From assembly GCA_004764695.1 (NCBI GenBank), contig SMSO01000033.1, positions 558,001 through 622,000 on the forward strand: a DNA stretch of 64,000 bases, given 5' to 3'. Positions 4,018 through 50,764 of this stretch are shown here, piece by piece; the stretch's first letter is position 1; every line of letters begins with the position of its first letter. The stretch is from Schizochytrium sp. TIO01 (Eukaryota; Protista; Bigyra: Labyrinthulomycetes). The notes beneath the pieces are model-generated. The model ran no database searches. It was not told the DNA's origin and saw nothing but the letters and a program-made list of their open reading frames with translations. A program made the translations under genes and the position numbers.

Positions 4018-4816
4018 ACAAACTAAACTCCTGAGAAAATAAGAAACTATCACAACCTCGTTGTGATTCCAGCTGCTCCCGAACAAGATGCAATCGAATG
4101 TACGACCACCGATATCAAAGGATGAAAAAGAACGCACATGATTAGGAGATGTGATGCTGGTAAGTCCTGTTGAAAACACATTGATTTGCCAGTTGGTACG
4201 AACTTCCTTAAGGTTCGCCCCTGCAAAATCTCGAGCCTTGTAATTCTGTACCTTAACCTGCCTTTGCAACTTCAAGGAGTCCATATCACAAGTAAGCGTA
4301 TAGACTGTTGAGATCACCCCATGTTTCTCACATTAATCTCTACCCACCCAACTATCGTGTTGACTATTTGTCTTCATGTTTTACTTTAAACTATATTTCC
4401 TAATCTCCCTCTATCCTAGGTCTTAGCATACTCTGCGCCTCTGTTTTGTGAAAGACAATACTACGGATCTACAGTCTTGGAAAACACGCTGGAGGTTCTC
4501 AGAACATAGAATTTGTAAAGCGAAATAAGATTATTCATGAGGTGTGCTCAGCTGCGGCTGAGTAGTATATGTGCCTCAAATGAAGCTTCAGATAGGCCCT
4601 GTCTTATGACTTTTGCAAACATAGCCTACTCTGTTTCCTTAGAAAAGAAAGTTGCCTGTCATTCGAAATCTTTCGCATAACACAGACAAAAAAATCAACA
4701 TAAACAATCAAACTGACATTATTAATTTATGATAGTTCTCACCTAAATTTAAAAGTAAATTATAAATTGTATAGTTATAAACTTAATTTTATAATTTTAA
4801 AAAATAAAAAAATAAT

Positions 4817-4888
4817 TTCCCATACCGGGAATTGAACCCGGATCTGCTCGGTGAAAGCGAGCGATGCTAACCATTACACCATATGGGA
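4817..4888 (-). tRNA. tRNA-Glu (UUC)
   Basis: Reverse complement TCCCATATGGTGTAATGGTTAGCATCGCTCGCTTTCACCGAGCAGATCCGGGTTCAATTCCCGGTATGGGAA: acceptor stem, GCTCG/CGAGC anticodon stem, loop CT-TTC-AC, T-loop GTTCAA; T-run downstream. Confidence 0.95.
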
Positions 4889-4988
4889 ACTATATGCCAT
4901 ATGTTGATAACGTACTTTTCACAAAGGTATATGAAGACCTCGCTTTTTGTAAAACAAGGAAAAAATTCGGCTTCAACACAAAAAGAAG

Positions 4989-5059
4989 TTCCCACGCCGG
5001 GAATCGAACCCGGAGATTGACGGTGAGAGCGTCAAATGTTGCCATTACACCACATGGGA
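4989..5059 (-). tRNA. tRNA-Glu (CUC)
   Basis: Reverse complement TCCCATGTGGTGTAATGGCAACATTTGACGCTCTCACCGTCAATCTCCGGGTTCGATTCCCGGCGTGGGAA: TGACG/CGTCA stem, loop CT-CTC-AC. Confidence 0.95.
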
Positions 5060-5363
5060 TTTGTGATCAGATATTTGAAGTCATGGTCTAACCATTTATA
5101 TACTTCAATTGAAGTGAATAGCAGCTCCACAAATTAAATTTTATTGAAAAAGCCCTAACAGCAACCTCCTTGCATAAAACAACTTTACAACATGGTGGCG
5201 TCTACTTCTCGTCCAACTAAAACAAAATAGAATAGAAAATGCCTATAAGCATCTTACTCTTGCGCTACCTCTTAAAGAATACTGTCCTATCATAACCTTC
5301 AAGCCCAAACAAATTATTTCCTCAAAAATGAACTGTCAGCAATACCGCAACATCAAAAAAAAG

Positions 5364-5434
5364 TTCCCACGCCGGGAATCGAACCCGGAGATTGACGGTG
5401 AGAGCGTCAAATGTTACCATTACACCACATGGGA
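5364..5434 (-). tRNA. tRNA-Glu (CUC), one D-loop variant
   Basis: Same as 4989-5059 except GGTAAC instead of GGCAAC; T8 terminator follows. Confidence 0.95.
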
Positions 5435-5474
5435 GAAGAATCATATAAGAGATAATGAAGCCAAAGCTTCGAAT

Positions 5475-5546
5475 TTCCCATACCGGGAATTGAACCCGGA
5501 TCTGCTCGGTGAAAGCGAGCGATGCTAACCATTACACCATATGGGA
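5475..5546 (-). tRNA. tRNA-Glu (UUC)
   Basis: Identical to 4817-4888. Confidence 0.95.
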
Positions 5547-5869
5547 GTTGACGCTGGAATTTCCCAGAAGCCGTGACCTTCCAATGCATGCGCTCATTCT
5601 TAAAGCTCCACCCGCAAACAGCATTCGAGGGGAAAAAAAGCAGTCATACGTTAACAGGCAGACAGACGGCTACAAGAACAAGTTAGTTGTTAAAAAAACA
5701 AACTGAAAACGTAGAACAAAGTACTTTTGCAACAAACAAAGTACTTTTGCAACAAACAAAGCACAGCCACCCAACCACCCATCCATGACTCCAGGTAGAA
5801 CCTGATAATGCAAACACCATTTCTATCTTAAAAAGACAAAAAAAGAAGAAGAAGAAGAGAAAAAGAAAG

Positions 5870-5940
5870 TTCCCACGCCGGGAATCGAACCCGGAGATTG
5901 ACGGTGAGAGCGTCAAATGTTGCCATTACACCACATGGGA
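5870..5940 (-). tRNA. tRNA-Glu (CUC)
   Basis: Identical to 4989-5059; T-rich tract follows. Confidence 0.95.
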
Positions 5941-5983
5941 GAAGAAACAATTAATACCGCATGTGACAAGTGGCGGTAATATA

Positions 5984-6055
5984 TTCCCATACCGGGAATT
6001 GAACCCGGATCTGCTCGGTGAAAGCGAGCGATGCTAACCATTACACCATATGGGA
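5984..6055 (-). tRNA. tRNA-Glu (UUC)
   Basis: Identical to 4817-4888. Confidence 0.95.
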
Positions 6056-6092
6056 GAGATAAGAACATTGGAAAAGAACGGTCAGAACACTG

Positions 6093-6164
6093 TTCCCATA
6101 CCGGGAATTGAACCCGGATCTGCTCGGTGAAAGCGAGCGATGCTAACCATTACACCATATGGGA
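6093..6164 (-). tRNA. tRNA-Glu (UUC)
   Basis: Identical to 4817-4888. Confidence 0.95.
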
Positions 6165-6196
6165 GAAATAAGGGGAAGGAACCGGAAAGAAATTGT

Positions 6197-6268
6197 TTCC
6201 CATACCGGGAATTGAACCCGGATCTGCTCGGTGAAAGCGAGCGATGCTAACCATTACACCATATGGGA
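6197..6268 (-). tRNA. tRNA-Glu (UUC)
   Basis: Identical to 4817-4888. Confidence 0.95.
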
Positions 6269-6499: not shown

Positions 6500-7700
6500 C
6501 TACTGGAGCTAGCTACTTTAGTAATTTACTACCGTACAGTATAAACTCTAGTTTTTCTTTAGTGAATGATGACTTTACATAATAATGTTGATATATCAAC
6601 TCCGTGGTACTGTCTCTTCTTTTTGTAATATCTGATCTTGGTGCCGAATGCTGACTCAAAGTGGCCTCTCGCACCTTGCAGCACCCAGACAGGCCTCTAC
6701 CTTGGTAGAATAGAAACTCATAGTATTGCTTGTCCTGAGTGCAATAGTTTTTTATCTGTTGTGTATTGTAGACGTATAATTTTAACCATTTGGGGCGAGC
6801 AATATCACTTTCTGCCATGTACATTGCTTGGAAATGCATGTCTTTTTAAATCCTATGCTTTGTAGGATATGACGGGTATACTGATCCGTTGTTGCATAAC
6901 TTGTCCTACAATTTGTGTTAACTTTTCTCACTATAACTATTATATTTCACTCATAATCCCTCAATTGGTCGTCCGCCGATACTACGGAAGTATCATCCAA
7001 ATCAAATTTTAACTGAATCAGAGACAAGAAACGTTGAAAATTGCATTAATTTGTAAACAAAATTTGTGTTGAAGTAGGTTGAAACTATATTAATACGCAT
7101 TTAGTAATAAATCCCAACGAATGTGGATGTTTTGCACGTATCTGACTTGCTGTATCGTCCAGCTTTAACTCTTTGTTTCCTCAAAAATAGCCAAAGCATG
7201 TTTAATTTATATTGATTTTCTGAGTATATAGTTGAACGTCCTCCGCAGCAAGACTTTTGGTGACAGTTCATTTGTTTGCCGACTTTTTTGCAATGTATAT
7301 GTCGCCTTTCTGCCATCAAAGGGCGAACTGTTGTTCAAAGACTATTCAGGGTGTGGTTTCCCGTGATGATAAACTTGTCAGACTTGTTTATTAAGTTCGA
7401 CACGATTTCGGTATAGCCATCAGGCTTTATGAATCACTATGGATAATTGAAGATGATATGAAGTTTCGCTCCAGGCGAACTCAACGATACATGTGCGTAA
7501 GAATGCTGAAGTGTATTGCAATTGTATACGATGAGGACCTGCGGTGGAATTGCATTCGTTCGTTTTCTTAACAGGGATATACTTTCGCAAACACGATTAT
7601 GTGTGTCCAGTTCGATCACGAGCCTCTCGCTCTCTTTCGCGTGGTACGAGTATTGGTTTCTCCTTGTTGATACTTAATGTGTCTAAATTTTTAAATTATT
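6500..7700 (-). pseudogene. Possible eroded P-loop NTPase gene (Crinkler-type NTPase-like); boundaries approximate
   Basis: Frameshifted fragments in plausible order: KPILVPRERE, SLSSPGA/KTSYHL (broken Walker A near 7460-7485), SLNNSSPFD...LLRRTFNY, SIGGRPI. Many stops. Confidence 0.3.
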
Positions 7701-8112
7701 ATGGCAACATGTCCTTACTCAGAATGGAAGACTCACTGCATCCTATCTTGGTTGAACCCAGTTGTTATTGTTGTCAGATCAGAAGAACTCATGACCCTCA
7801 AATTCGGGGTGTTCAATGCTGTGTCTATAAGCCTGATGTAGGGCATCTTGGTTAGTCGTTAATAAATGAGCAGTGTCTTATCATTCCCTAAATATGAATT
7901 TTAAAAAGCATCTTTATTAGAGAATAAACATCTCACAGTATCCCGTCTATGTGTATCAGATAATGAGAGCTAAAGGCCATTAAAATATTTTGGGAACTAA
8001 TTTATATTATTTGCGAGTGACGGAAGTATAAGACTGGTAAACTCTTTGAACATTGCCTCATGCAAAACACCAATATTAATGGTTCCATTTGCGAGTGATT
8101 AGTCGGTCGTAT

Positions 8113-11100
8113 TTACCGTGTCATGCTCTCAATATCTGGTGCTGGAGTCAAAGCATTTGACATTCTCTTTGTAGACCGAATTGGATTCGTTCGCTTAGTG
8201 AAGCTAGAAGGCATCGATAAATGAGCACTTTTAAGGCGCACAAGGCTCGCAAGGCTGACTTGATCGTAGTCATATAGATCATCCTTGCCATGGTCGCTTT
8301 CAGCGTCAAGTTCCAAGACTTCCCTAGTAGAATGGCTACCCTGAAGGGCTCTGGTCAGGGAATGGCGAGCTTGATAGCGACTAGCATAATCCGGAGGCAT
8401 GTTTTCTGAATCAAGAAAGTAATTTTCATTGTTTTCATTGTCCTCGTCGTCTTCGTCCATGTTGCTTGATGAAAGATCTTGTTGGTTGCTGCCATCACGC
8501 ATGGCGAATCTCCACTGCCCTCCAAATGGTCGCCGGACACGTTCTGAGAGCGGTCGTAAAGAACGAAGGCGACTCGTAAACTTCGACTGAGCTGCGAGAA
8601 CAGATTCGAAGAAGGGATCTGGTGTAAATCCAAGAGCTCGTCTTAAGAGCGAGCGACGTGATTCTGCACCAGAGGTATCAAGCTTGCGCTCTTCATCAAG
8701 GACACGGCGAATAGTACTAGTGACCTCAATCAATGGGATTGACCTATTCATGAAATCCCGACCGGTCTCAATGTATTGCCTGCATACATCAGCATACGAC
8801 CAAACTTGATGCCCCGGGAGGACAAGCACTGGATCTGGGATAGGTTCCAGGTTAATAAGATCCACAGCATTGTCAAGATCGATTGGCGGATCACCAGGGT
8901 CAAGAATCACTGGGGCGAGGCTTCGATATAATGGCAGTGCATCTGCTCGTAGATGCCGTTGCCATTCTGCCCAGTTAGTCATCCACGTTTCAAACTGAGC
9001 GTTAGTGATTGCTTGAGCTTCCTCGCGAACCTCATCTAACACATCTTCAGGGATATGGCGACGATAAATCAAGGTAGACGTCCTTACAGGTAGATTGAGA
9101 TCATCCCGTAGAGCAATCTCAAATTCCAAATGAATACTCACATCGTCGCCCATAGTTTCCAATGAATACTTGAGAGCGGCCTGGTCGACGAGCTCCAGCC
9201 GCATGATTCTTCGACCAAACTGGCGAAGCTTCAATGCACTACCCCGCGCACGAGCAATTTCTGTCATCATTTCCATGCGTCCCAATGCCCATATAGGTTT
9301 ATCATTGCAGGCAGTCAAAGAGTCTGCCATCAAAGTGAGCATTTCAGGCCGAACAAGTGGGTCAGAATATATAGTATGGAGAACCTGCGCAACACGTGAT
9401 TGAAGAACAGGACGCAGATCCTCATTACGATATTCTTGAGAGCCCGTAATACGTGATAGGAAGTCAAGAACACCTTGACGGTATGCAGGCTCTATGAGTT
9501 CAGAAAGGCGACTCTGATCAATTTGAAAATCCTCTGCAGCTCTTGTCAAGCGTGTCGAATCCTGCAAGTCTGTGTTATCGCTGCTGCTGGAGTTCCGATG
9601 TTGCATATCTACTTGGAATTCTATTTGCGCGGAATTCAAAAGAGTACGGTTGAGTGTAATCAATGCTGCTTGAGCAATAGGATCAGTAGCTAGCTTGGTA
9701 AAGGGGAGATACAAACATAACTGGCCTACCCGAGGATGACGCAACACCTCTAGAGGGACGTGTTCTAGTCGTGTGCAATAAGACAGGTCAATTACAGACC
9801 CACCAATTAAAAGATCCTCTGGCAGAACTCGTAGAGATGTACATCCTCTCGCAAACAGGTTACCACCCACGATCAATCCATCAGGCAAGTTAGAGATAGC
9901 TTTGCACCCATGGAGGAATAAATCACCATCTACCCGCAGACCTTGTGGTAGAGATATTAGAGATTTACAATCGCGCAAGTCTAAACTGCCTTTCACATGG
10001 CGAAGGCTGCGTGGAAGCTCGCGTAGCGAGTGACAACGCTCAAGAATAATACTCCCTCCCACGTCGAGTCGAGTTGTACCTAAAGAAATGAGCCTTTTGC
10101 AGTTCCAAAGATCCAAGTCCCCACCAACGAAACCCATCGATATAGGCAGAGTCTTTAGACGCCGGCATCCTCCTAGGTACAAGTTGTCCTCCACAGTAAG
10201 ACCTGCAGGAAGGCTAGTTAATCTAGAGCAATTTTCTAAGTGCAAAGAACCTTTAACATGTCGCAATGACTTGCCGATTCTGCAAAGTTGGGCGCAGTTT
10301 GTTGCAATCACTGATCCACCGATGCTTTGACCAGGATCCCCAATTGTGATTAACTCTAAACAATCAGAAATATTTAAATCTCCACTAACGTACAAATGTT
10401 CTGGGAGGGTTCTAATGCGAGACGAGCCAGCAAGATCTAGGTTTCCTTGAATATGGGTCTCTGGTGGAAGCTGTGTTAGGGACGAGCATCCTGCAATTTC
10501 CACATCACCAGCAATGTGCCATCGTTCGACCTCCCGAATATCCAAAAATTTTGAGCAGTTTCTAAAACTGAATCCACAAAGGTTTTCTGTAAGCATGGAT
10601 GGAGCTGTACCTATTTCACAAGATACTAGTTGCAGGTGCGTAGAAAGTGATAGAGGGTCTTGGATGTGCGATAACGGCAGGGCTGCACGATATATCATCA
10701 TTTTATTTGTGACTGGCTGAAAGTTACTCTTCCATTCAGCTCCGAATCCAATGAGACAGAGAGAATGCCCAGAGGTGACTTCAGCTGTAAATTGAATACG
10801 GGGGGACGCAGGTCTATTTTCATTCTCAGCGCTTGATGTTTCCTCCAAAGCATGTAAGTTGACAGGGGAGGATGGTTCGCCTTCGTTGCTTTTAGGTGAC
10901 ATCGAGGTTCTAGCAACAACAATAAGGGACCCTTCCTCCACAGTAAAACCCATAGGAAACAAGTTCAATGTGCTGACAGGCTGTTTGGTTTCGAGCTCAA
11001 CGTTTATGAGAACGTGCCCATTTTTGACAATTAAATGGGGCATATGCTGGTTTGCAGAAATGGAAAATACTAGCCATGAATGAATTCCTTGCTCAATATT

Positions 11101-11997
11101 AGATATCTCTACACGTCGCATCTTATTTTTTCCGTAGGCATGAATATTGAATTTTCCGAATGTAGCCGTAAGGTCCGGATTGAGTATTCTCGTTGCCATT
11201 TGGAGTATTTTCTTTTGCAGAGTTACCTCCGAGACCTCATCAGAATCTATATTTTCCCCGCAAAGTTTCTTCTGCATTGACTTAAGTTTAGTAATTGTGA
11301 AATGTGATCCGTAAACAAAAGGCAAGGTGGCGTAGAGAGAAAGTGTCGCAAGGCCAAGGCCAAACAGGTACCCTGGAAGAATAAGTCCCCCAGCAACATA
11401 AGACATGGCTGATGCTCGACACGGACTAGAGAGCACTCGTTTGAGACATGTATTATACCACGCAAATCTCGTTGGTTCATAGCTTGGTTGTCCTATGACC
11501 CACACTACTCCACTCTCATCAAAAGGTTCAGGTACATACACTTCTAGATCACACAATATTGCTGACCTATTATTGCAAAGTTCAAGGTACTGAAGGATGC
11601 ATGCATCAAGCGTATGCACCATGCATCCTGTTGAGGGCCTCAGTCGCTGGCAGCAGGACATACCCGAAACGGATGTTTCGTATTCATGAATATGTAGTAT
11701 GTCTTCTCGAAGACACATCCTAGGAAAGCAAATCGTTGATACAGTTTCCAAATCATTCAATGGAACTGTACAGCAGCCTAGACATGTTTCCCTCTGGCTT
11801 TGAACCGCAAGTCGATCTGTAAAGTGTGCAATTGGTTGTCTGTCTGATTCTTCATTGGTTTCTTGAAGTACTGGGGTCGACAAAGGGGGATTAAGTTCAT
11901 TTATCAGCCTCTCTTGTACCACAGCGTCCATGATATTGTCACTTGCATCTCCCTGTTCAACCTCCACATCATATCTTCTACCCACATAATTTCTCAT
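8113..11997 (-). CDS. LRR + NEL-type E3 ubiquitin ligase domain + U-box-like domain protein (1294 aa)
   Basis: About 21-22 aa LRRs (LTSLPAGLTVEDNLYLGGC, ~10550-9730). NEL-like region with ADSLTACNDK (Cys codon 9307-9309) and DDVSIHLEFEIALRDDLNLPV. U-box-like DLINLEPIPDPVLVLPGHQVWSY. One N-terminal hydrophobic segment. Confidence 0.8.
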   Translation of the reverse strand: MRNYVGRRYDVEVEQGDASDNIMDAVVQERLINELNPPLSTPVLQETNEESDRQPIAHFTDRLAVQSQRETCLGCCTVPLNDLETVSTICFPRMCLREDILHIHEYETSVSGMSCCQRLRPSTGCMVHTLDACILQYLELCNNRSAILCDLEVYVPEPFDESGVVWVIGQPSYEPTRFAWYNTCLKRVLSSPCRASAMSYVAGGLILPGYLFGLGLATLSLYATLPFVYGSHFTITKLKSMQKKLCGENIDSDEVSEVTLQKKILQMATRILNPDLTATFGKFNIHAYGKNKMRRVEISNIEQGIHSWLVFSISANQHMPHLIVKNGHVLINVELETKQPVSTLNLFPMGFTVEEGSLIVVARTSMSPKSNEGEPSSPVNLHALEETSSAENENRPASPRIQFTAEVTSGHSLCLIGFGAEWKSNFQPVTNKMMIYRAALPLSHIQDPLSLSTHLQLVSCEIGTAPSMLTENLCGFSFRNCSKFLDIREVERWHIAGDVEIAGCSSLTQLPPETHIQGNLDLAGSSRIRTLPEHLYVSGDLNISDCLELITIGDPGQSIGGSVIATNCAQLCRIGKSLRHVKGSLHLENCSRLTSLPAGLTVEDNLYLGGCRRLKTLPISMGFVGGDLDLWNCKRLISLGTTRLDVGGSIILERCHSLRELPRSLRHVKGSLDLRDCKSLISLPQGLRVDGDLFLHGCKAISNLPDGLIVGGNLFARGCTSLRVLPEDLLIGGSVIDLSYCTRLEHVPLEVLRHPRVGQLCLYLPFTKLATDPIAQAALITLNRTLLNSAQIEFQVDMQHRNSSSSDNTDLQDSTRLTRAAEDFQIDQSRLSELIEPAYRQGVLDFLSRITGSQEYRNEDLRPVLQSRVAQVLHTIYSDPLVRPEMLTLMADSLTACNDKPIWALGRMEMMTEIARARGSALKLRQFGRRIMRLELVDQAALKYSLETMGDDVSIHLEFEIALRDDLNLPVRTSTLIYRRHIPEDVLDEVREEAQAITNAQFETWMTNWAEWQRHLRADALPLYRSLAPVILDPGDPPIDLDNAVDLINLEPIPDPVLVLPGHQVWSYADVCRQYIETGRDFMNRSIPLIEVTSTIRRVLDEERKLDTSGAESRRSLLRRALGFTPDPFFESVLAAQSKFTSRLRSLRPLSERVRRPFGGQWRFAMRDGSNQQDLSSSNMDEDDEDNENNENYFLDSENMPPDYASRYQARHSLTRALQGSHSTREVLELDAESDHGKDDLYDYDQVSLASLVRLKSAHLSMPSSFTKRTNPIRSTKRMSNALTPAPDIESMTR

Positions 11998-12931
11998 ATT
12001 GGAATCCAGTTTGAGGAAATAAACTTAAAAGATGGTATTGTCCCTCTCGATCCCAAACGATACAGCCTTCACGGAGTTGCGTTCAGAATAGCCTCTTGGT
12101 GGCGCTCTTAAGCGTGACGTCGCACACGACTCCAGAAACAAATCAGCAAGCAACGTAAGTGAATCTAAGCTCACCACTACTTCTATGGCAGAGAAAACCC
12201 TTTTGCAACTCAGGGCTCTTGTTAGTACGAGTGCTGACTCGAGTATCTAATTTGAGCTCAAGCAAAGTTATCTATCTCACGAAATGATTATCGTCTCCAC
12301 TCACTTGATCTTCAAACTGAGGTCAGCTACCTAGTTGATTTTTACTCTTGTTGCTATTTTGTGTCTAAGCTTGTAGGCGCTTTCCAGGCGAAGGCGATCC
12401 TTCTGTTGCGCAGCCGAGCCAGGTGGACCTTAACACAGCGTCCTTTGTGACGCCTTGGTGTTCGAAGCCAGCTGATTTGGGTCTGCTTTGCACTCGAGCA
12501 TCGGTTTAGAAGGCTTGTATCTCTTGAGGAGTGCCCGGCCCAGTTTCTCGCTTTTCTCTCCTTGCTACAGATTTTGTCGCGTGCACGTGCTCCAAAGGAT
12601 CGTTCCAGTGGTTCTGGTAGTTCCTTAAAAAAGAAGAAAAAGACATTAAAAATTATTTATCGCATAAGTAGGTCTTACCCCCCCCCCCCCAAAAAAAAGA
12701 AAGTTGCAGTGTGTACTCATAGGTAAAGCTACCCAATCGATATGTTTGTACCTTAAAAAAGAAAAGAAAAGGACGGCAAGTTGGTAGTGCTGGTGCAAAG
12801 GACATAAATAAATAAAATCATTTATGGTGTACTTAAGTTCACTCTGGACACGCCGTTGGTCACGTTGGCAATATTTTTGCGCGATTTACAGGTGTTGCAG
12901 TTATTTGTCTTGATTGTGTGAAAACCTCAGA

Positions 12932-28013: not shown

Positions 28014-31000
28014 TTAAACAAGGGCGTCCTCTTCTAATTCCATCTTTGTGCAAAGAAAAGCAAGATATAAATCAGGCCCAGTGCAATTGCTATCACATGA
28101 AAGGTCTGAAGTGGTATCGATGCCAAAACATCGCTCTCTAAGAGTATCCCTTCGTGATGTAATTCGACCAATAGACATGGTCCATGTGTCATCAAGGCTT
28201 GCAACACCTGCATAACCTCCGAACATCCATAAGGTGTCTCCATGCACCGCGATTGCGGCACCAGTGCGTGGGACAGGTACTGAGTTCTGGTCTTCAAGAG
28301 TAATTACAGTTCTTGTGCCAGAATATACATCGAGCGAGCTAAGGGGTGCAGTATGAAATGAGTCAAACATCAAAATTCTACCCAAATTCAGCATGGGAAC
28401 TACTATCTCTGTGTCTCGAAATGCATCCATGCTGACTTCCCCGCGTTGATCCCAATTATTTGTTTGGATATTATATACCCACAGGTCATTGCGCAAACCT
28501 TCATTAGGGTCTTTGCCACCAAAAATGTAGATCGCCCCATTCAGCGCGAAGCTAGAATGACTATAGCGCGCAGGAGGACCACTAGTGATGTTTGTGAGGT
28601 TGGTCCAGCTTGGTTTGGGCTCACAAGGATGGATTTCTAACTCGAGTTGCCATGAAAGAATGCCCCCAGAAGTCAATTGGTCCATTTCTTCGTCTGCACT
28701 ATATATAGACCAACCCTCAGGATTGTACAAAACACCTTCGTACACAGATATTGGGGATGAAGGGCGGTAAGTTCCGCTTGTTTGAAACGCGAAAGCTTCT
28801 CGTAATGTTGAAGACGCATCATCATTTAAAGTGAGCTGCACTGTCTTATTGCTGTTAGGATTGCAGCTTGGGCGCGCGCTACTATCGCGATCAAAGACAA
28901 GTATACCAAGGGTATCATCCACGTTTCTAGCCTCGTATCCAGCCCCCCTGAGCCATATGCGAAGTGAATTCGGACATGGGTGATCGATGACCAAGGTAAG
29001 TTGTCTCACCCTGTTAATACATAAACTACCTGATTCCATGGAATCAATTAGAGAGCCCTCTGTTTCTACTCCTGGGGAGGGTAGTAATGCACCTTCCCGA
29101 AAATCTGCGAAATATACTGGAGAAGCGCTTTCTATTACCACATTGCTTGATTGCGTTGGATCATAAACATAAAAGCTGTTTAATGAGCTTCCCCTCCAAT
29201 CTTCACTCAACGAACTTTGAGACAGTGAGCTTTTGATTGTAAAGGAAGATATACGACCAGTTGTAGGATTGCGTGTAATACTAGGGGTTTCTCCCTGTTC
29301 ATTGGTCTGTGACACCTTTTCGAGATTTAAGCCGCCAAATATGTACAGGTAGTTGTTCCACTGCACGGCCGAGTGCAAGCCTCTACCTTCCGGTAGGGTG
29401 GTTTCTGAGAAACGGGTCTCGATTGTCCAAACCTTAGCATCCGGATCATAAACCCAAAGCTCATTAGACGAGCGTCGACCTTGAACACATTTTGCAGTTC
29501 GAGCTTCCCCTGGCAGCTCGCACGAAAAGCCATCGGTGTAACCTCCAAACAGGTAGATTCTGCCATTTTCGAGCCGAGTGGCACTGTGCCCGTGGCGAGG
29601 CATCCAACGCGCATTCTCGAGTGACATTTCAGATATGTCATCATTCGCTCGCCCACTGCCACTGGCAGGATCATCAGACCATGGTGTAGACAATAAGCGT
29701 GCATCGATATCACTACTAGTACGGAAGCGTGCTTCGATAGGCATGGCGAACGGTCGAAATGGAACACTAGACCATGCTGGGTATGGTGTTTCCTTAGTTC
29801 GTACCATTAAACTATTCCCAACCATTTCTGGGCCTTCTCGAGGTGATACTGCACGGATTCTTATGGAATAAAGGGTATCCGCTGTGAGTCCCTTGAGTAC
29901 TGTTTGGTTTACGTCATCAATATTCTTGATAACTTTGAAATCTTCGTTTCCAATACCAGTTGATGCCTCAATTAAATACCCTGCGCCACTTTGTTTGCTC
30001 CATTGCAAAGTAATACTAGAATGATTCTTGTCAGCTACCCATATTTTAGGGGCGATGTAGCCATACTCAACAGCCTCAGCTTGGTTTCTTGAAAGCATCA
30101 GATATGCCGAGTTTGCAAATGAGCTTCCTCCACCGCCACCAGCTCCTTCAACTCCACTGCCGCCTCCACCGCCGCCAAAGTACCCTCCTCCACCTCCACC
30201 TCCACCTTCAAATCCTCCTGCCCCATCGCCACCAAAGTTATGTCCTCCATTTGATGCAGACGTTGCCGGTGTTGCCAGAATTGAGGCAAGACTTCCACTT
30301 TGCCCTCCTTGTCCACCAAGAATGGTGGAACCTGCGAAACCAGGAACTGCAAGGATAGAATAGTCAGCAAGTGGAGCATGGCCTATATCTTTGTTATTGT
30401 GATCAGCAAAGAGTCTTGTGTTTGGGTCTACATCATCGAGGCCTAAAAGAACCAGGCTTGAGTCTGGCGTTGAGCCACTTTGATGCGCATCCCCACCATT
30501 TGCACAACAATAGTCTGAACCACCAGCGCCTCCACCTCCTGCGGCAGTGAGAATTGGTGTATCCATAGATGAGTGTAATAAAATGGAGCTTGCTCCACCT
30601 CCACCAGCACCATGTCGCAGAACACCTTTTCCGCCAGATCCACCTCCGTTCCAGCCGCCTTGGCCTTGTGACCCCCCAGCATGGCCACCGCCACCAACCC
30701 GCACGTGTAGTGCGCCAGTAAGAATTTGCTTTGATAATGTAGCTTGCAGAAATGCGCCAGCTCCGCCATGCGCTGTCTCTGGGCTCATACCAGTGCTACC
30801 TCCACCAGCGCCCCATAATTTTACCTCTAGAGAATCAATAAGCGGGTCATTTGGTATTTCATAGACTTCCGTTGAGCCTGTATAAAAGAAAAGCTTAGCA
30901 GGCCAAAAAGACTCTGCAATTCCACTTCCCTGTAATGAACGAGGGCGAATACTCACTAAGCCCGGTCCTCCTGCGAAACCATATTGTTCGCTTCCAATCC

Positions 31001-33038
31001 CCCCAGTGTTCAATCCACCGCCAACGCCAACGCCATTGACATACTGAGGGTCATCCGCATGTGGGGCACTTCCATTGACACCAATATCAAGAATAATATT
31101 GGCTAGCGCGCGAGATCGTGCGTCGAGTAGATCTAAGTTTGGTGGAGCATCAACAAGAGTTTCTGGAGACATTTCAGTCCGAATTGGACCTACAGGATCA
31201 GTCCATGATCCTGCACTCTGCCTTCCAGAATCAGTATCAATGTGAATTTCGCGCATTCGGAAAGCGTACCATGTGTATGGTTTTAGGCCGTTCACTGTAG
31301 CATTAAGGTACTCAGACTGGGGTGCATAACGTGGTAATATACCATTTTTAATGGTTGAAACTGCCACAGGGCCACCAGGGCCAGACCAATAGCCATCAGA
31401 GTCTCGAGATATGCTTTCAGAGATGACAACAAGCGGTGGTTGATCCCCTTGATGATATATTGAGTTAAAGACAATGGTGTATGTATATCCATGTTCTGTA
31501 GTCCGAGAGCTCCGTGTGACAGATTTCGCGGTAATGCCAAGACCAGACAATGCAGTGCGTAGTGCTGAAGCAGATATATCGTACGGGAGTGCAGAAGTTG
31601 GAGACCGAGTGTCTCGAAAAGCAAGTGTAAAAGAACCCCCGTTTATTACACCTGAGCCGGGATCAATTCGAGTAGTAATAGTTTGGACTTCTGCTTGGCC
31701 AGCATAGTATGGCGGCTGACCTTCCATGTTGACATAAGACCAGAGGCTATTATCTCCATCGAGAAATTCGGTAGACCTTCGACCATCTTTCAATTCTCGT
31801 GCTTGCATTTGAAACTCCAAAACTCGGTCGTGGTTTTGCGCCCAAGTTACAAGGATGCTTTCTGGACCACTGGGATTAACACTTAGCTCAATGTCACTGC
31901 GAGATTTCTCTGCAGTATGAATTGTCTTCGTTGTGGTATGTGTTGCATCTTGACCTGGAACTAATGCTCGGACTAAGTAATCAGTATCAGCTTCTAAATT
32001 ACCAGCAACGAAGTCCGAGGAATCTCCAGATGTTGCACGAGGAAGAGTTTGCCAGACCCCAGCGCTCATCTGAATTTGTATTTTTGCCCCCTCAGGAGCA
32101 CCTTGTAGTTGAACCCGAAAATAGTCTTCGGCAATACTTATGACCTGAATATTACTAGCAGTTGCGAGTTTTCGCCCCCCCGGGATCGATATTGTTCGAG
32201 ACGGATTAGAGTAGTGTGACCATACCAAAGTCCCGCGAAGGTCGCGAACCAGTGCTCGTACACGATACAAGTAGACTTTGTAAGGCTCAACAGAAGAATC
32301 ATCGAAGAAGCATTTGTCCTTGTAGGGATCGCGTTTATCTGGGTTGTTCAAGCAGGCAAATGACGATGTTCGACCAGGACGAATTTCAGAAACCCCAACC
32401 GTGCGAATTTGGCTTCCAAGAAAGCTCGCATCTAGCGTGCTTGCGACAACTTGTAAGGCTGGATAAGCTTCGCCTGCGTCCATGAAGGTAACTGTCCATT
32501 GATAGCCGCCTTGAGCGTCTGGTCCAGAGCGTTTTACCTGAACACTTTCGATATTACCAAGACTTTCGAGTGCATTCACGATCTCTCCTTCTGAAGCACT
32601 ATAACTGATCCATGGCGTTGTAGATGGGCTTTCAGGATCTGCATCGAAGAGTCCATCCTTCTGCATCGAGAGGCGGAAGAATCCCGATGTAATTGATTGT
32701 CCCTCATCTGCACGAGTCTCAATTAGCTGGACCTCCCTTGGCTTTGCTTCATTGGTTGCCATAACTCGCCCAACCTCGGCCCATGATGAGCCTAATTCTG
32801 CCCTTTCTACAGCAAAACCTTCACCGTTAAAAATAGATTCTTCTGATGCCAGCCAATGGACTTTCACAATCTTCTTGTTCTCAGCCAACTCAGTGGTTGA
32901 AGATGTTGACAAATCTACCTCAATGTCCATGAGAGCCTCAGCGAGCCGCATATTCCACGAAAAGGCTAGCATCGCTGCTATCAAGACGCGCAACGCGAGT
33001 CCCATCCCGCCGCATCTGGGCCTCGCCATGGCGGGCAA
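28014..33038 (-). CDS. Secreted multidomain protein: FN3 repeats, ALK/LTK-type glycine-rich domain, Kelch repeats, P-domain-like insert (1674 aa)
   Basis: Signal peptide; FN3 motifs (GLKPYTWYAFRMR, GLTADTLYSIRIRA); FYTG...VKLWGAGGG...GGGGGASSI Gly-rich domain; Kelch motifs PRHGHSA, IYLFGG, ARYSHS; IDHPCPNSLRIWL...GGILSWQLEL P-domain-like. Confidence 0.85.
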   Translation of the reverse strand: MPAMARPRCGGMGLALRVLIAAMLAFSWNMRLAEALMDIEVDLSTSSTTELAENKKIVKVHWLASEESIFNGEGFAVERAELGSSWAEVGRVMATNEAKPREVQLIETRADEGQSITSGFFRLSMQKDGLFDADPESPSTTPWISYSASEGEIVNALESLGNIESVQVKRSGPDAQGGYQWTVTFMDAGEAYPALQVVASTLDASFLGSQIRTVGVSEIRPGRTSSFACLNNPDKRDPYKDKCFFDDSSVEPYKVYLYRVRALVRDLRGTLVWSHYSNPSRTISIPGGRKLATASNIQVISIAEDYFRVQLQGAPEGAKIQIQMSAGVWQTLPRATSGDSSDFVAGNLEADTDYLVRALVPGQDATHTTTKTIHTAEKSRSDIELSVNPSGPESILVTWAQNHDRVLEFQMQARELKDGRRSTEFLDGDNSLWSYVNMEGQPPYYAGQAEVQTITTRIDPGSGVINGGSFTLAFRDTRSPTSALPYDISASALRTALSGLGITAKSVTRSSRTTEHGYTYTIVFNSIYHQGDQPPLVVISESISRDSDGYWSGPGGPVAVSTIKNGILPRYAPQSEYLNATVNGLKPYTWYAFRMREIHIDTDSGRQSAGSWTDPVGPIRTEMSPETLVDAPPNLDLLDARSRALANIILDIGVNGSAPHADDPQYVNGVGVGGGLNTGGIGSEQYGFAGGPGLVSIRPRSLQGSGIAESFWPAKLFFYTGSTEVYEIPNDPLIDSLEVKLWGAGGGSTGMSPETAHGGAGAFLQATLSKQILTGALHVRVGGGGHAGGSQGQGGWNGGGSGGKGVLRHGAGGGGASSILLHSSMDTPILTAAGGGGAGGSDYCCANGGDAHQSGSTPDSSLVLLGLDDVDPNTRLFADHNNKDIGHAPLADYSILAVPGFAGSTILGGQGGQSGSLASILATPATSASNGGHNFGGDGAGGFEGGGGGGGGYFGGGGGGSGVEGAGGGGGSSFANSAYLMLSRNQAEAVEYGYIAPKIWVADKNHSSITLQWSKQSGAGYLIEASTGIGNEDFKVIKNIDDVNQTVLKGLTADTLYSIRIRAVSPREGPEMVGNSLMVRTKETPYPAWSSVPFRPFAMPIEARFRTSSDIDARLLSTPWSDDPASGSGRANDDISEMSLENARWMPRHGHSATRLENGRIYLFGGYTDGFSCELPGEARTAKCVQGRRSSNELWVYDPDAKVWTIETRFSETTLPEGRGLHSAVQWNNYLYIFGGLNLEKVSQTNEQGETPSITRNPTTGRISSFTIKSSLSQSSLSEDWRGSSLNSFYVYDPTQSSNVVIESASPVYFADFREGALLPSPGVETEGSLIDSMESGSLCINRVRQLTLVIDHPCPNSLRIWLRGAGYEARNVDDTLGILVFDRDSSARPSCNPNSNKTVQLTLNDDASSTLREAFAFQTSGTYRPSSPISVYEGVLYNPEGWSIYSADEEMDQLTSGGILSWQLELEIHPCEPKPSWTNLTNITSGPPARYSHSSFALNGAIYIFGGKDPNEGLRNDLWVYNIQTNNWDQRGEVSMDAFRDTEIVVPMLNLGRILMFDSFHTAPLSSLDVYSGTRTVITLEDQNSVPVPRTGAAIAVHGDTLWMFGGYAGVASLDDTWTMSIGRITSRRDTLRERCFGIDTTSDLSCDSNCTGPDLYLAFLCTKMELEEDALV

Positions 33039-49349: not shown

Positions 49350-50764
49350 ATGTTCGGCCCCCTCGGTAGCATCCAGGCCCGCGTGGCCGTCGAGAAGGAG
49401 CACAAGCCCGTGCGTGCCCTCTCCGTCGCTCAGCCCGTCAAGGCCATGAGCGCCCACGAGCAGGGCCCCTTCGACCTCATGTACTTCGTCAAGGGTGCCT
49501 TCTCCGGTGTAAGTTAATCTTGAACCAAGTATCTATGAACCTGAACACATAGATCCAGTTCACGTTTTTACGTGCTAGCTTTAGTCGTTGAACTGTGTTT
49601 TTAATCCTAGACGACCTACTTGGCCATACTCTTAGTTTCCAGCAAGCGCCGGCTTGGTTTTTAAGTCTATACTATTATGGGCGGGACTAAAGTTTGGGCA
49701 TGGATCTTTTTGTGACCAGGATCTATATCATCTTGTTGTTGTCGATCAAATTTATACTAACTGCATTTCACTTCAAATCGTGTTGAATTACGTTACGTAT
49801 GTTCAATGGATTCCTTTCATTAATTCTAATCGTTGACATTGCGAATCTTCAATGCACTTTATGATGACTATTTCTAATCTTACAGGGTGTCTGCTGTGGT
49901 ATCACCCACGGTTCCCTCTGCCCCGTCGATGTCGTCAAGACCCGCATGCAGCTCGAGCCCACCAAGTACACCGGCATGATCTCTGGCTTCCGCAAGGTCA
50001 TCGCTGAGGAGGGCATGGGTGCTCTTGCCACTGGTCTCGGACCCACCGTTGTCGGCTACTTCATCCAGGGCTGGTTCAAGTTCGGTGGTGTCGAGTTCTT
50101 CAAGATCCAGCAGGCTTCTTACTTCGGTGTTGAGAAGGCCTGGGAGTACCGTTTCCCCATCTACCTTTCCTCTGCCGCCATGGCCGAGTTCATTGCTGAT
50201 ATCTTCCTCTGCCCCCTCGAGGCCACCCGCATCAAGCTCGTGTCCAACCCCAGCTACGCTTCCGGTCTTATCACTGCCTTCCCCAAGGTTATTGCTGACG
50301 AGGGCTTCTTCGCTGGCTTCTACTCTGGTTTCGTCCCCATCCTCTTCAAGCAGATCCCCTACACCATGGCTAAGTTCGCTGTCCAGGGTGCCGCCCAGGA
50401 GAAGATGTGCAACGTGTCTGGCATCGACCTCGCCACCGCCTCTGACTCTACCAAGGTTTCCCTCTCCCTCGCTTCTGGTGTGATTGCCGGTGTTGCCGCT
50501 GCCATCATCTCCCACCCCGCTGATACTCTCCTCTCCGTCATCAACAAGCCTGGTGCTGGTGGCAAGGGCTCCATGGTTGTCCGCCTCGGCCGCGTCGCCG
50601 CCGAGATGGGCCTCGTCAAGCTCTGCCTCGTTGGTCTCCCGGCCCGTTGCGTCATGATCGGTACCCTCACCGCCGGTCAGTTCGCCATCTTCGACTCCGT
50701 CATGGCTGTCACCGGTGCCGAGAAGTTCCACTTCGTCGACCCCGCCGACTTGGAGCAGAAGTAA
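49350..50764 (+). CDS. MIR1: Mitochondrial phosphate carrier (SLC25A3/MIR1/PIC2 family), two exons (49350-49508, 49886-50764)
   Basis: Exon 1 ends YFVKGAFSG at GTAAGT; exon 2 starts GVCCGITHGSLCPVDVVKTRMQ. Motifs GYFIQGWFKFGG, AEFIADIFLCPLEATRI, KQIPYTMAKF, SHPADTLLS, MIGTLTAGQF. Strong C-ending codon bias. Confidence 0.92.

Follow-up and report, generated by a model that had tools for sequence, protein, structure and literature searches.

Reviews treat NEL ubiquitin ligases as a bacterial family, described in proteobacterial pathogens (PMC13720258; PMC9320238). Can a eukaryote encode such an enzyme as a gene of its own, from where would the gene have come, and how might its product work? These questions are raised by an open reading frame (ORF) on the minus strand of a stretch of 64,000 nucleotides from the thraustochytrid Schizochytrium sp. 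TIO01 (GenBank assembly GCA_004764695.1, contig SMSO01000033.1, positions 558,001 to 622,000 of the forward strand), which we call the window and number from its first letter. A first-pass annotation of the window, made from the letters alone, had read this ORF as a horizontally acquired and domesticated effector-type ligase, in which leucine-rich repeats (LRRs) and a NEL domain precede a U-box-like segment added in the eukaryote. Here we find that the ORF encodes a predicted LRR-NEL ligase of bacterial type, that it is one member of an expanded thraustochytrid family in which the NEL is constantly paired with a U-box-fold domain, and that the same pairing already occurs in bacteria, from which the family was probably acquired.

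The NEL domain is the sole significant Pfam domain of the protein, with PF14496 (IPR029487) matching residues 836-1018 at an E value of 1.1e-20 and 74.5 bits against a cut-off of 24. A profile built from the NEL regions of 16 paralogs of the same genome matched every solved IpaH, SspH and SlrP structure, the best E value being 1e-25 for IpaH, and the alignment places the family segment DaCgDkpiwALnqm on IpaH tesCeDrvaltwnnl and the family segment vDDvcvyLrfEiaLrdeLdLpV on IpaH vDeieVyLafqtmLaekLqL. Because the family motif aligns with the CEDR segment of IpaH, Cys897 and Asp899 of the window protein fall on the catalytic CxD, and neither residue varies among the 16 aligned paralogs. An AlphaFold2 model of residues 800-1140 (341 aa; mean predicted local distance difference test (pLDDT) 82, predicted template modelling score 0.77) retrieved NEL structures at Foldseek ranks 1-10, namely SspH2, SlrP, SspH1, IpaH3, IpaH1.4, IpaH1880 and IpaH9.8 (probability 1.00 for ranks 1-9 and 0.98 for rank 10). 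The first-pass annotation thus fared well for this part of the protein: the ORF, the sole long one between 7 and 13 kb of the window, is intact at the 1294 residues it had given, its quoted motifs are in place (LTACNDK at residues 894-900, with Cys897; RIMRLELVDQAA at 930-941; DDVSIHLEFEIALRDDLNLPV at 951-971), its count of about 13 LRRs is fair for 12 regular units preceded by one or two degenerate ones, and its assignments of the NEL domain and the catalytic CxD were upheld by the hidden Markov model, profile and fold comparisons. These results confirm that a eukaryote encodes what is, by sequence, an LRR-NEL ligase of bacterial type.

The relationship to the characterised effectors IpaH, SspH1, SspH2 and SlrP of Shigella and Salmonella is one of shared architecture at low identity. 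As in these proteins, LRRs, which are a typical but not a universal partner of NELs, are followed by an all-helical NEL in which the CxD aligns and the acidic helix D-E/D-V/I-x-V-Y-L...L.LP is common to both, the fold matching that of SspH2 (3g06, Foldseek E value 7e-5), and Salmonella SlrP could be aligned over the LRRs and the NEL together (E value 2.7e-8). The window protein differs in that it is only about 17-21% identical to them, reads AC.DKPIWAL where they read CEDRV, and adds a C-terminal U-box and a long orphan N-terminus. Its repeats are units of 21-22 residues that contain Cys (pattern V.G.L.L..C..L..LP..L), as opposed to the 20-residue LPX type of the effectors, and their profile matches include the solved LRR protein 8z5u (E value 1e-10) and the LRRs of the plant NLR RPP1 (E value 9e-9). 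We considered membership in the type III secreted NEL effectors and rejected it. The protein is homologous to them, but its gene sits on a chromosome-scale contig with eukaryotic genes on either side and gives a transcript contig with a terminal A-run; as the product of a gene that a eukaryote carries and apparently transcribes, it is not a type III secretion substrate.

Approximately 60 residues beyond the NEL are retained in every paralog with the consensus TDL.G.P..DPV........WS..DLL.HWV.TG.DF.N...S.E.....L.R, and most paralogs terminate shortly after this segment. Modelled together with the NEL, this segment folds at pLDDT 85-92 into a beta-hairpin and a helix, followed by a short helix and a strand, and the Foldseek matches of the 341-residue model that rank below the NEL structures are mostly U-boxes (Prp19, E4A, E4B, LubX and Ufd2). 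When the tail was modelled separately (pLDDT 78.6), nearly all Foldseek matches were U-box or RING domains, and the best of them, to the Prp19 U-box dimer, had a probability of 1.00, template modelling scores of 0.61/0.71 and a root-mean-square deviation of 2.5 over 60 columns; VIA-align gave a Z score of 5.7 over 57 residues. The aligned tails have no conserved Cys or His, and the domain is therefore a U-box and not a zinc RING. The U-box-like segment of the first-pass annotation is genuine, both in its fold and in its conservation as a module. It resembles U-box ligases such as Prp19, CHIP, E4B/Ufd2 and Legionella LubX in its beta-hairpin and helix at residues ~1043-1100 without conserved zinc ligands, and differs from them in its position behind a Cys-dependent ligase domain, in the silence of the Pfam U-box model and in the replacement of the residues that contact ubiquitin-conjugating enzymes (E2s).

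The bacterial relatives of the family tie this tail to U-boxes by sequence as well. A profile search of 1.84 billion representative proteins returned 2007 proteins at E ≤ 1e-3, of which 227 reached E ≤ 1e-30; the second tier (550-930 residues) included proteins from Candidatus Rhabdochlamydia and from a Rhabdochlamydiaceae symbiont (on a 1.74-Mb contig), annotated only as 'NEL-type E3 ubiquitin ligase domain-containing protein'. In addition, a pattern scan of GTDB with family-specific patterns yielded only 4 bacterial loci, and a 4-Mb metagenome-assembled genome (MAG) of the Gammaproteobacteria in GTDB carries four separate NEL-U-box genes, so that the fusion is not confined to Chlamydiota. 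The last 65-90 residues of the bacterial proteins read as a textbook U-box (C-P-I-[TS]...E....PV.....Y-D-Y..F..W-[WY]-I..G-t-D-P-.-T-r..I....L-.-R), even though Pfam PF04564 had no match in them at E ≤ 0.1. A profile of 20 bacterial proteins matched LubX (E values 1.8e-4 and 3.7e-4) and Prp19 (E value 1.4e-3) through its positions 367-432, whereas its alignments to IpaH, SspH and SlrP end at about position 354-365, short of the tail; Pseudomonas NELs lack the U-box tail. The bacterial and eukaryotic tails are in turn homologous (hhalign probability 96.6%, E value 6.7e-10), and it is by way of the bacterial relatives that the sequence link of the eukaryotic tails to U-boxes becomes solid. Judged from these alignments, the NEL-U-box proteins are a distinct subfamily of NELs. 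The Rhabdochlamydiaceae and gammaproteobacterial proteins, which to our knowledge are uncharacterised, share the LRR-NEL-U-box cassette with the window protein and fall sister or basal to the eukaryotic clade in trees, but are only ~25-30% identical to the window protein and possess a canonical CPIT...DP.T U-box and the catalytic motif SCDDRV. Two statements of the first-pass annotation are not upheld. The nearest bacterial clade already has the complete cassette, its U-box motif being the clearer one, so the U-box did not join the NEL within the eukaryote; and the proposed likeness to proteins of bacteria such as Endozoicomonas is supported by no named match, the named bacterial kin being the Rhabdochlamydiaceae and the gammaproteobacterial MAG.

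Phylogenetic reconstruction with a quick tree of 155 rows (LG+G4) and a careful tree of 75 rows (LG+C20+F+G4 with posterior mean site frequencies; support as ultrafast bootstrap/SH-like approximate likelihood ratio test) gave results in agreement. A branch supported at 100/100, with a long stem of 1.76, sets off a clade of 41 rows that contains each of the 25 named eukaryotic rows and zero named bacteria. When the tree is rooted with Pseudomonas NELs, the Rhabdochlamydia, gammaproteobacterial and unnamed second-tier rows fall outside this clade, toward the outgroup. The window protein itself belongs to a subclade of seven rows (99/93), the others being four paralogs, a Hondaea protein and a protein of another eukaryote, and has a long terminal branch (1.39). 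No relative was found in viral contigs, and nothing therefore points to a viral vector. The tree could also be taken to mean that the NEL-U-box clade originated in protists, from which bacteria living inside them then obtained it. In favour of this, U-boxes are of eukaryotic origin, host domains are often picked up by Chlamydiae and other endosymbionts, and the root hangs on a distant outgroup. We regard a transfer in this direction as distinctly improbable, given that NELs are widespread in bacteria, that the Pseudomonas root leaves the bacterial NEL-U-box rows basal and paraphyletic and the eukaryotes as one derived clade on its long stem, and that the bacterial SCDDRV is nearer to the CEDRV of IpaH than is the eukaryotic AC.DKP. 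Of the earlier proposal, the horizontal origin and the subsequent domestication are supported, and the gain of the U-box within the eukaryote is not.

The window gene is one of at least 18 paralogs, with 18 NEL loci distributed across nine contigs of the genome. Sixteen of these loci entered the paralog alignment; all of them keep the CxD, and the tail is conserved across them. Their N-terminal parts vary, consisting of LRRs only, SPRY plus LRRs, Arm repeats or, in a protein of 3458 residues, an array of SAM domains. Three NEL-U-box paralogs of the same subclade as the window gene lie within 17 kb of one another (contig C24:1949952-1966773), an arrangement that suggests local duplication. Another locus (contig C31:2872556-2873105) is in two pieces separated by a TAA, and is probably a pseudogene or interrupted by a rare intron.

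Outside this genome, the top non-self matches of the profile search were proteins of the thraustochytrid Hondaea fermentalgiana, 50-69% identical to the paralogs, and two further eukaryotic homologs (the CAK9... series) came from another eukaryotic assembly, which we take to be that of a dinoflagellate. Six Hondaea proteins are 1:1 orthologs of paralogs in our genome (GBG33660.1, GBG34266.1, GBG27871.1, GBG24240.1, GBG26008.1 and GBG34058.1), indicating that the family expanded before the two genera split; no Hondaea ortholog of the window gene itself was present among the family representatives. The Hondaea proteins share the C-terminal NEL-U-box module with the paralogs and differ in their N-terminal domains (TPR, Arm, SPRY or LRR). 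Their database names, Nephrocystin-3, importin alpha, RPP5, ryanodine receptor and CSA1, are misleading, as all of them contain the NEL and the U-box tail, and the NEL-U-box assignment corrects these names.

Is the gene a true resident of the thraustochytrid nucleus? The assembly comprises 64.07 Mb in 37 contigs, those that we sampled being 2.3-9.8 Mb long, and the neighbours of the ligase gene in the window are eukaryotic: a trichohyalin-plectin-homology (TPH) protein, an FHA-WD40 protein, an Nma111-like protease, a BMT5-like rRNA methyltransferase, a Ctr copper transporter, an IP3-receptor-like fragment and CCDC34. The ORF is like these neighbours in guanine-cytosine content, overall and at third codon positions, and in codon usage, with a correlation of relative synonymous codon usage of 0.76 within the neighbours' own range of 0.58-0.84. 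The stretch is near-intact in 20 public sequencing runs from 11 studies. We therefore attach a negligible probability to contamination or a chimeric assembly having placed a bacterial effector gene in a protist contig, a possibility that the otherwise bacterial distribution of the domain and the lack of introns might have suggested: besides the flanking genes, the chromosome-scale assembly, the host-like codon usage and the recovery in independent runs, it would have to accommodate 18 paralogs on nine contigs, the fusions of paralogs to SPRY, SAM and Arm domains, the orthologs in Hondaea and a transcript contig that ends in a run of A. For practical purposes contamination is refuted, and the ligase gene is a nuclear gene of the thraustochytrid.

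Evidence for transcription of the gene comes from runs that software guessed to be RNA. One of these yielded a single contig of 4579 nt that spans the gene without joints, in keeping with the earlier description of the gene as intronless, and that carries a loose TTTTTTTT before position 7970 on the plus strand. Contigs of four such runs, each from a different study, are confined to about 7970-12540, depth being zero at 7000-7196 and 12713-12900. The jointless contig and the T-run on the plus strand together are the signature of an unspliced, polyadenylated minus-strand mRNA. Strains differ in the ORF by 10 synonymous and 10 nonsynonymous changes (ratio of nonsynonymous to synonymous polymorphism, pN/pS, about 0.31). 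At codon 927 (window position 9219) the assembly encodes Phe, and other strains as well as the paralogs and the homolog that we checked encode Leu (RQ[F/L]GRR); Phe927 is a strain-specific change within a conserved helix of the NEL.

The layout of the gene and its product is given in Table 1.

Table 1. Window coordinates of the ligase gene, the parts of its product and its apparent transcript (res, residues; UTR, untranslated region).
Feature	Position	Strand	State or basis
ORF, 1294 aa, stop codon counted in	8113..11997	-	intact
N-terminal region, res 1-440, orphan, Cys-rich, without recognisable domain	10678..11997	-	Pfam, BLAST and Atlas blank
Hydrophobic stretch, res 198-230, possible membrane anchor, unproven	11308..11406	-	Kyte-Doolittle
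Leucine-rich repeats, res 495-751, 12 units	9745..10515	-	unit listing and profile matches
NEL catalytic domain (predicted), res 836-1018	8944..9492	-	Pfam PF14496, profile, Foldseek
Catalytic CxD, Cys897-Asn898-Asp899	9301..9309	-	paralog invariance and IpaH alignment
U-box-fold domain, res about 1040-1100	8698..8880	-	AlphaFold2, Foldseek, VIA-align, profiles
Low-complexity C-terminal tail, res 1105-1294, acidic, Ser-rich	8116..8685	-	pLDDT <50 past res ~1105
Apparent transcript, ~4.57 kb, unspliced, A-run at end, 5' UTR ~540 nt, 3' UTR ~143 nt	7970..12539	-	contig of one run

The N-terminal region had no match in Pfam; its BLAST comparison with the paralogs and 150 family representatives returned only the self-match, and a search of the ESM Atlas with residues 1-470 found no usable look-alike. 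The hydrophobic stretch within it has means of 1.4-1.7 over 19-residue Kyte-Doolittle windows, contains Gly and Pro, is of borderline hydrophobicity and is without conservation elsewhere. Other parts of the window hold features unconnected with the ligase. Eight tRNA-Glu genes (anticodons TTC and CTC) are packed into 1.5 kb on the minus strand (4816-6268), ~1.8 kb downstream of the 3' end of the ligase gene. A minus-strand ORF of 1674 residues (28014-33038) contains an ALK/LTK glycine-rich domain together with fn3 and two Kelch propellers, a combination that is unusual outside animals, and at 49880-50764 two ORFs of 283 and 272 residues overlap nearly completely on opposite strands.

How might a ligase of this design work? 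Following the paradigm of IpaH and SspH (PMC13720258; PMC9320238), the LRRs would bind the substrate and perhaps autoinhibit the NEL, and Cys897 would take ubiquitin from an E2 of the UBC4/5 type as a thioester and hand it to the substrate. By analogy with these enzymes, we predict a Cys897-dependent ligase activity with a UbcH5-type E2; the genome encodes a canonical UBC4/5-like E2 (contig C24, L030:1489-1929). We further propose that the U-box may dock the ubiquitin-charged E2 (E2~Ub) for the NEL, which would make the protein a two-step 'RING then Cys' ligase similar to the RING-between-RING (RBR) enzymes. The likeness to RBR and RING-Cys-relay (RCR) ligases (Parkin, HOIP and MYCBP2) would be one of function only, a RING-type dock for the E2 combined with a Cys that relays ubiquitin, as the Cys domains of these enzymes have no relation to the NEL in sequence or fold.

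Taking origin and mechanism together, we consider it probable that one old transfer brought an LRR-NEL-U-box gene from bacteria, and that it was followed by expansion of the family and swaps of N-terminal domains, with the product acting as a NEL-U-box ligase whose U-box would dock E2~Ub. Several observations weigh against this account. In the trees, taxon names are lacking for most rows, and the root consists of three Pseudomonas NELs only; because of the unnamed rows and the narrow outgroup, a single transfer from a bacterium to a eukaryote is the best-supported history and not a proven one. The RNA status of the runs is a software guess, and contigs cannot reveal the strand. The N-terminal third of the protein is left unaccounted for. 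As to the tail, the Pfam U-box model PF04564 matched neither the whole protein at E ≤ 1 nor the 16 tails at E ≤ 10, the top PDB match of the eukaryotic tail profile was the Prp19 U-box at a borderline E value of 0.055, and the E2-contact signatures CP/CPI and DP.T are lost from the eukaryotic tails, in which hydrophobic substitutes remain. A predicted complex of the tail with the UBC4/5-like E2 scored 0.00, with the fold of the partner itself uncertain, and we list it here as evidence neither way.

The observations on the tail bear on a different role for it, in which the U-box would bind no E2 and serve as a structural, dimerisation or autoinhibitory cap, the NEL itself recruiting E2~Ub as in IpaH and SspH. 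Such a cap would be in line with the loss of the canonical motifs and with the blindness of Pfam to the tail; the best structural match, the Prp19 U-box, was moreover solved as a dimer, and classical NELs work without a U-box. We hold this to be possible but on the whole doubtful, as the tail is kept in every paralog, in more than 80 representatives of the eukaryotic clade and in the bacterial clade, the bacterial versions hold the full U-box signature, and hydrophobic residues are retained at both E2-contact positions of the eukaryotic tails. Alternatively, the protein could have two independent E3 activities, with the U-box transferring ubiquitin directly from E2 to substrate in the manner of CHIP or LubX, in parallel to the Cys-dependent NEL. 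Both folds are present, and the intact U-box motif of the bacterial relatives matches LubX, but NEL and U-box are always adjacent, in the same order and co-inherited, which fits one machine better than two and leads us to rate separate activities as unlikely.

With regard to where such a ligase would act, the LRR-NEL architecture is that of injected effectors, and some Labyrinthulomycetes attack other cells as parasites or decomposers, so that the thraustochytrid might export the protein as an effector against hosts, prey or competitors. This is very improbable in our estimation, since the N-terminus (MRNYVGRRYDVEVEQ...) lacks the character of a signal peptide, the paralogs bear the cytosolic signalling domains SAM, SPRY, Arm and TPR, and the enzyme requires cytosolic E1, E2 and ubiquitin. 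Turning to a role within the cell, one could imagine, speculatively and as an unlikely outcome, that a bacterial effector has been made into a system of cell-autonomous surveillance, in which at least 18 sensors with variable recognition domains (LRR, SPRY, Arm, SAM and TPR) would share a single NEL-U-box output module that works by a U-box-docked Cys relay, as a third type of 'RING-Cys relay', evolved independently of RBR and RCR and not recognised before.

Neither a eukaryotic NEL family nor a fusion of NEL and U-box was mentioned in the literature that we searched, which included the reviews of NEL ligases (PMC13720258; PMC9320238). The 'NEL' reported for NLRs of Klebsormidium and green algae (PMC7145615) denotes an LRR superfamily signature and not the catalytic NEL. 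Sequences of the Hondaea NEL-U-box proteins were already public, though mis-named. What is new is a NEL ligase that is encoded by a eukaryote, that has expanded there and that has a U-box in common with chlamydial relatives. The constant pairing of NEL and U-box, shared with the Rhabdochlamydiaceae, points toward a ligase design that has not been described. Having expanded before two thraustochytrid genera diverged, the family also provides a dated marker of gene flow between bacteria and protists, and a NEL family that is expanded, expressed and conserved in a eukaryote shows that domestication of an effector enzyme by a host lineage is possible.

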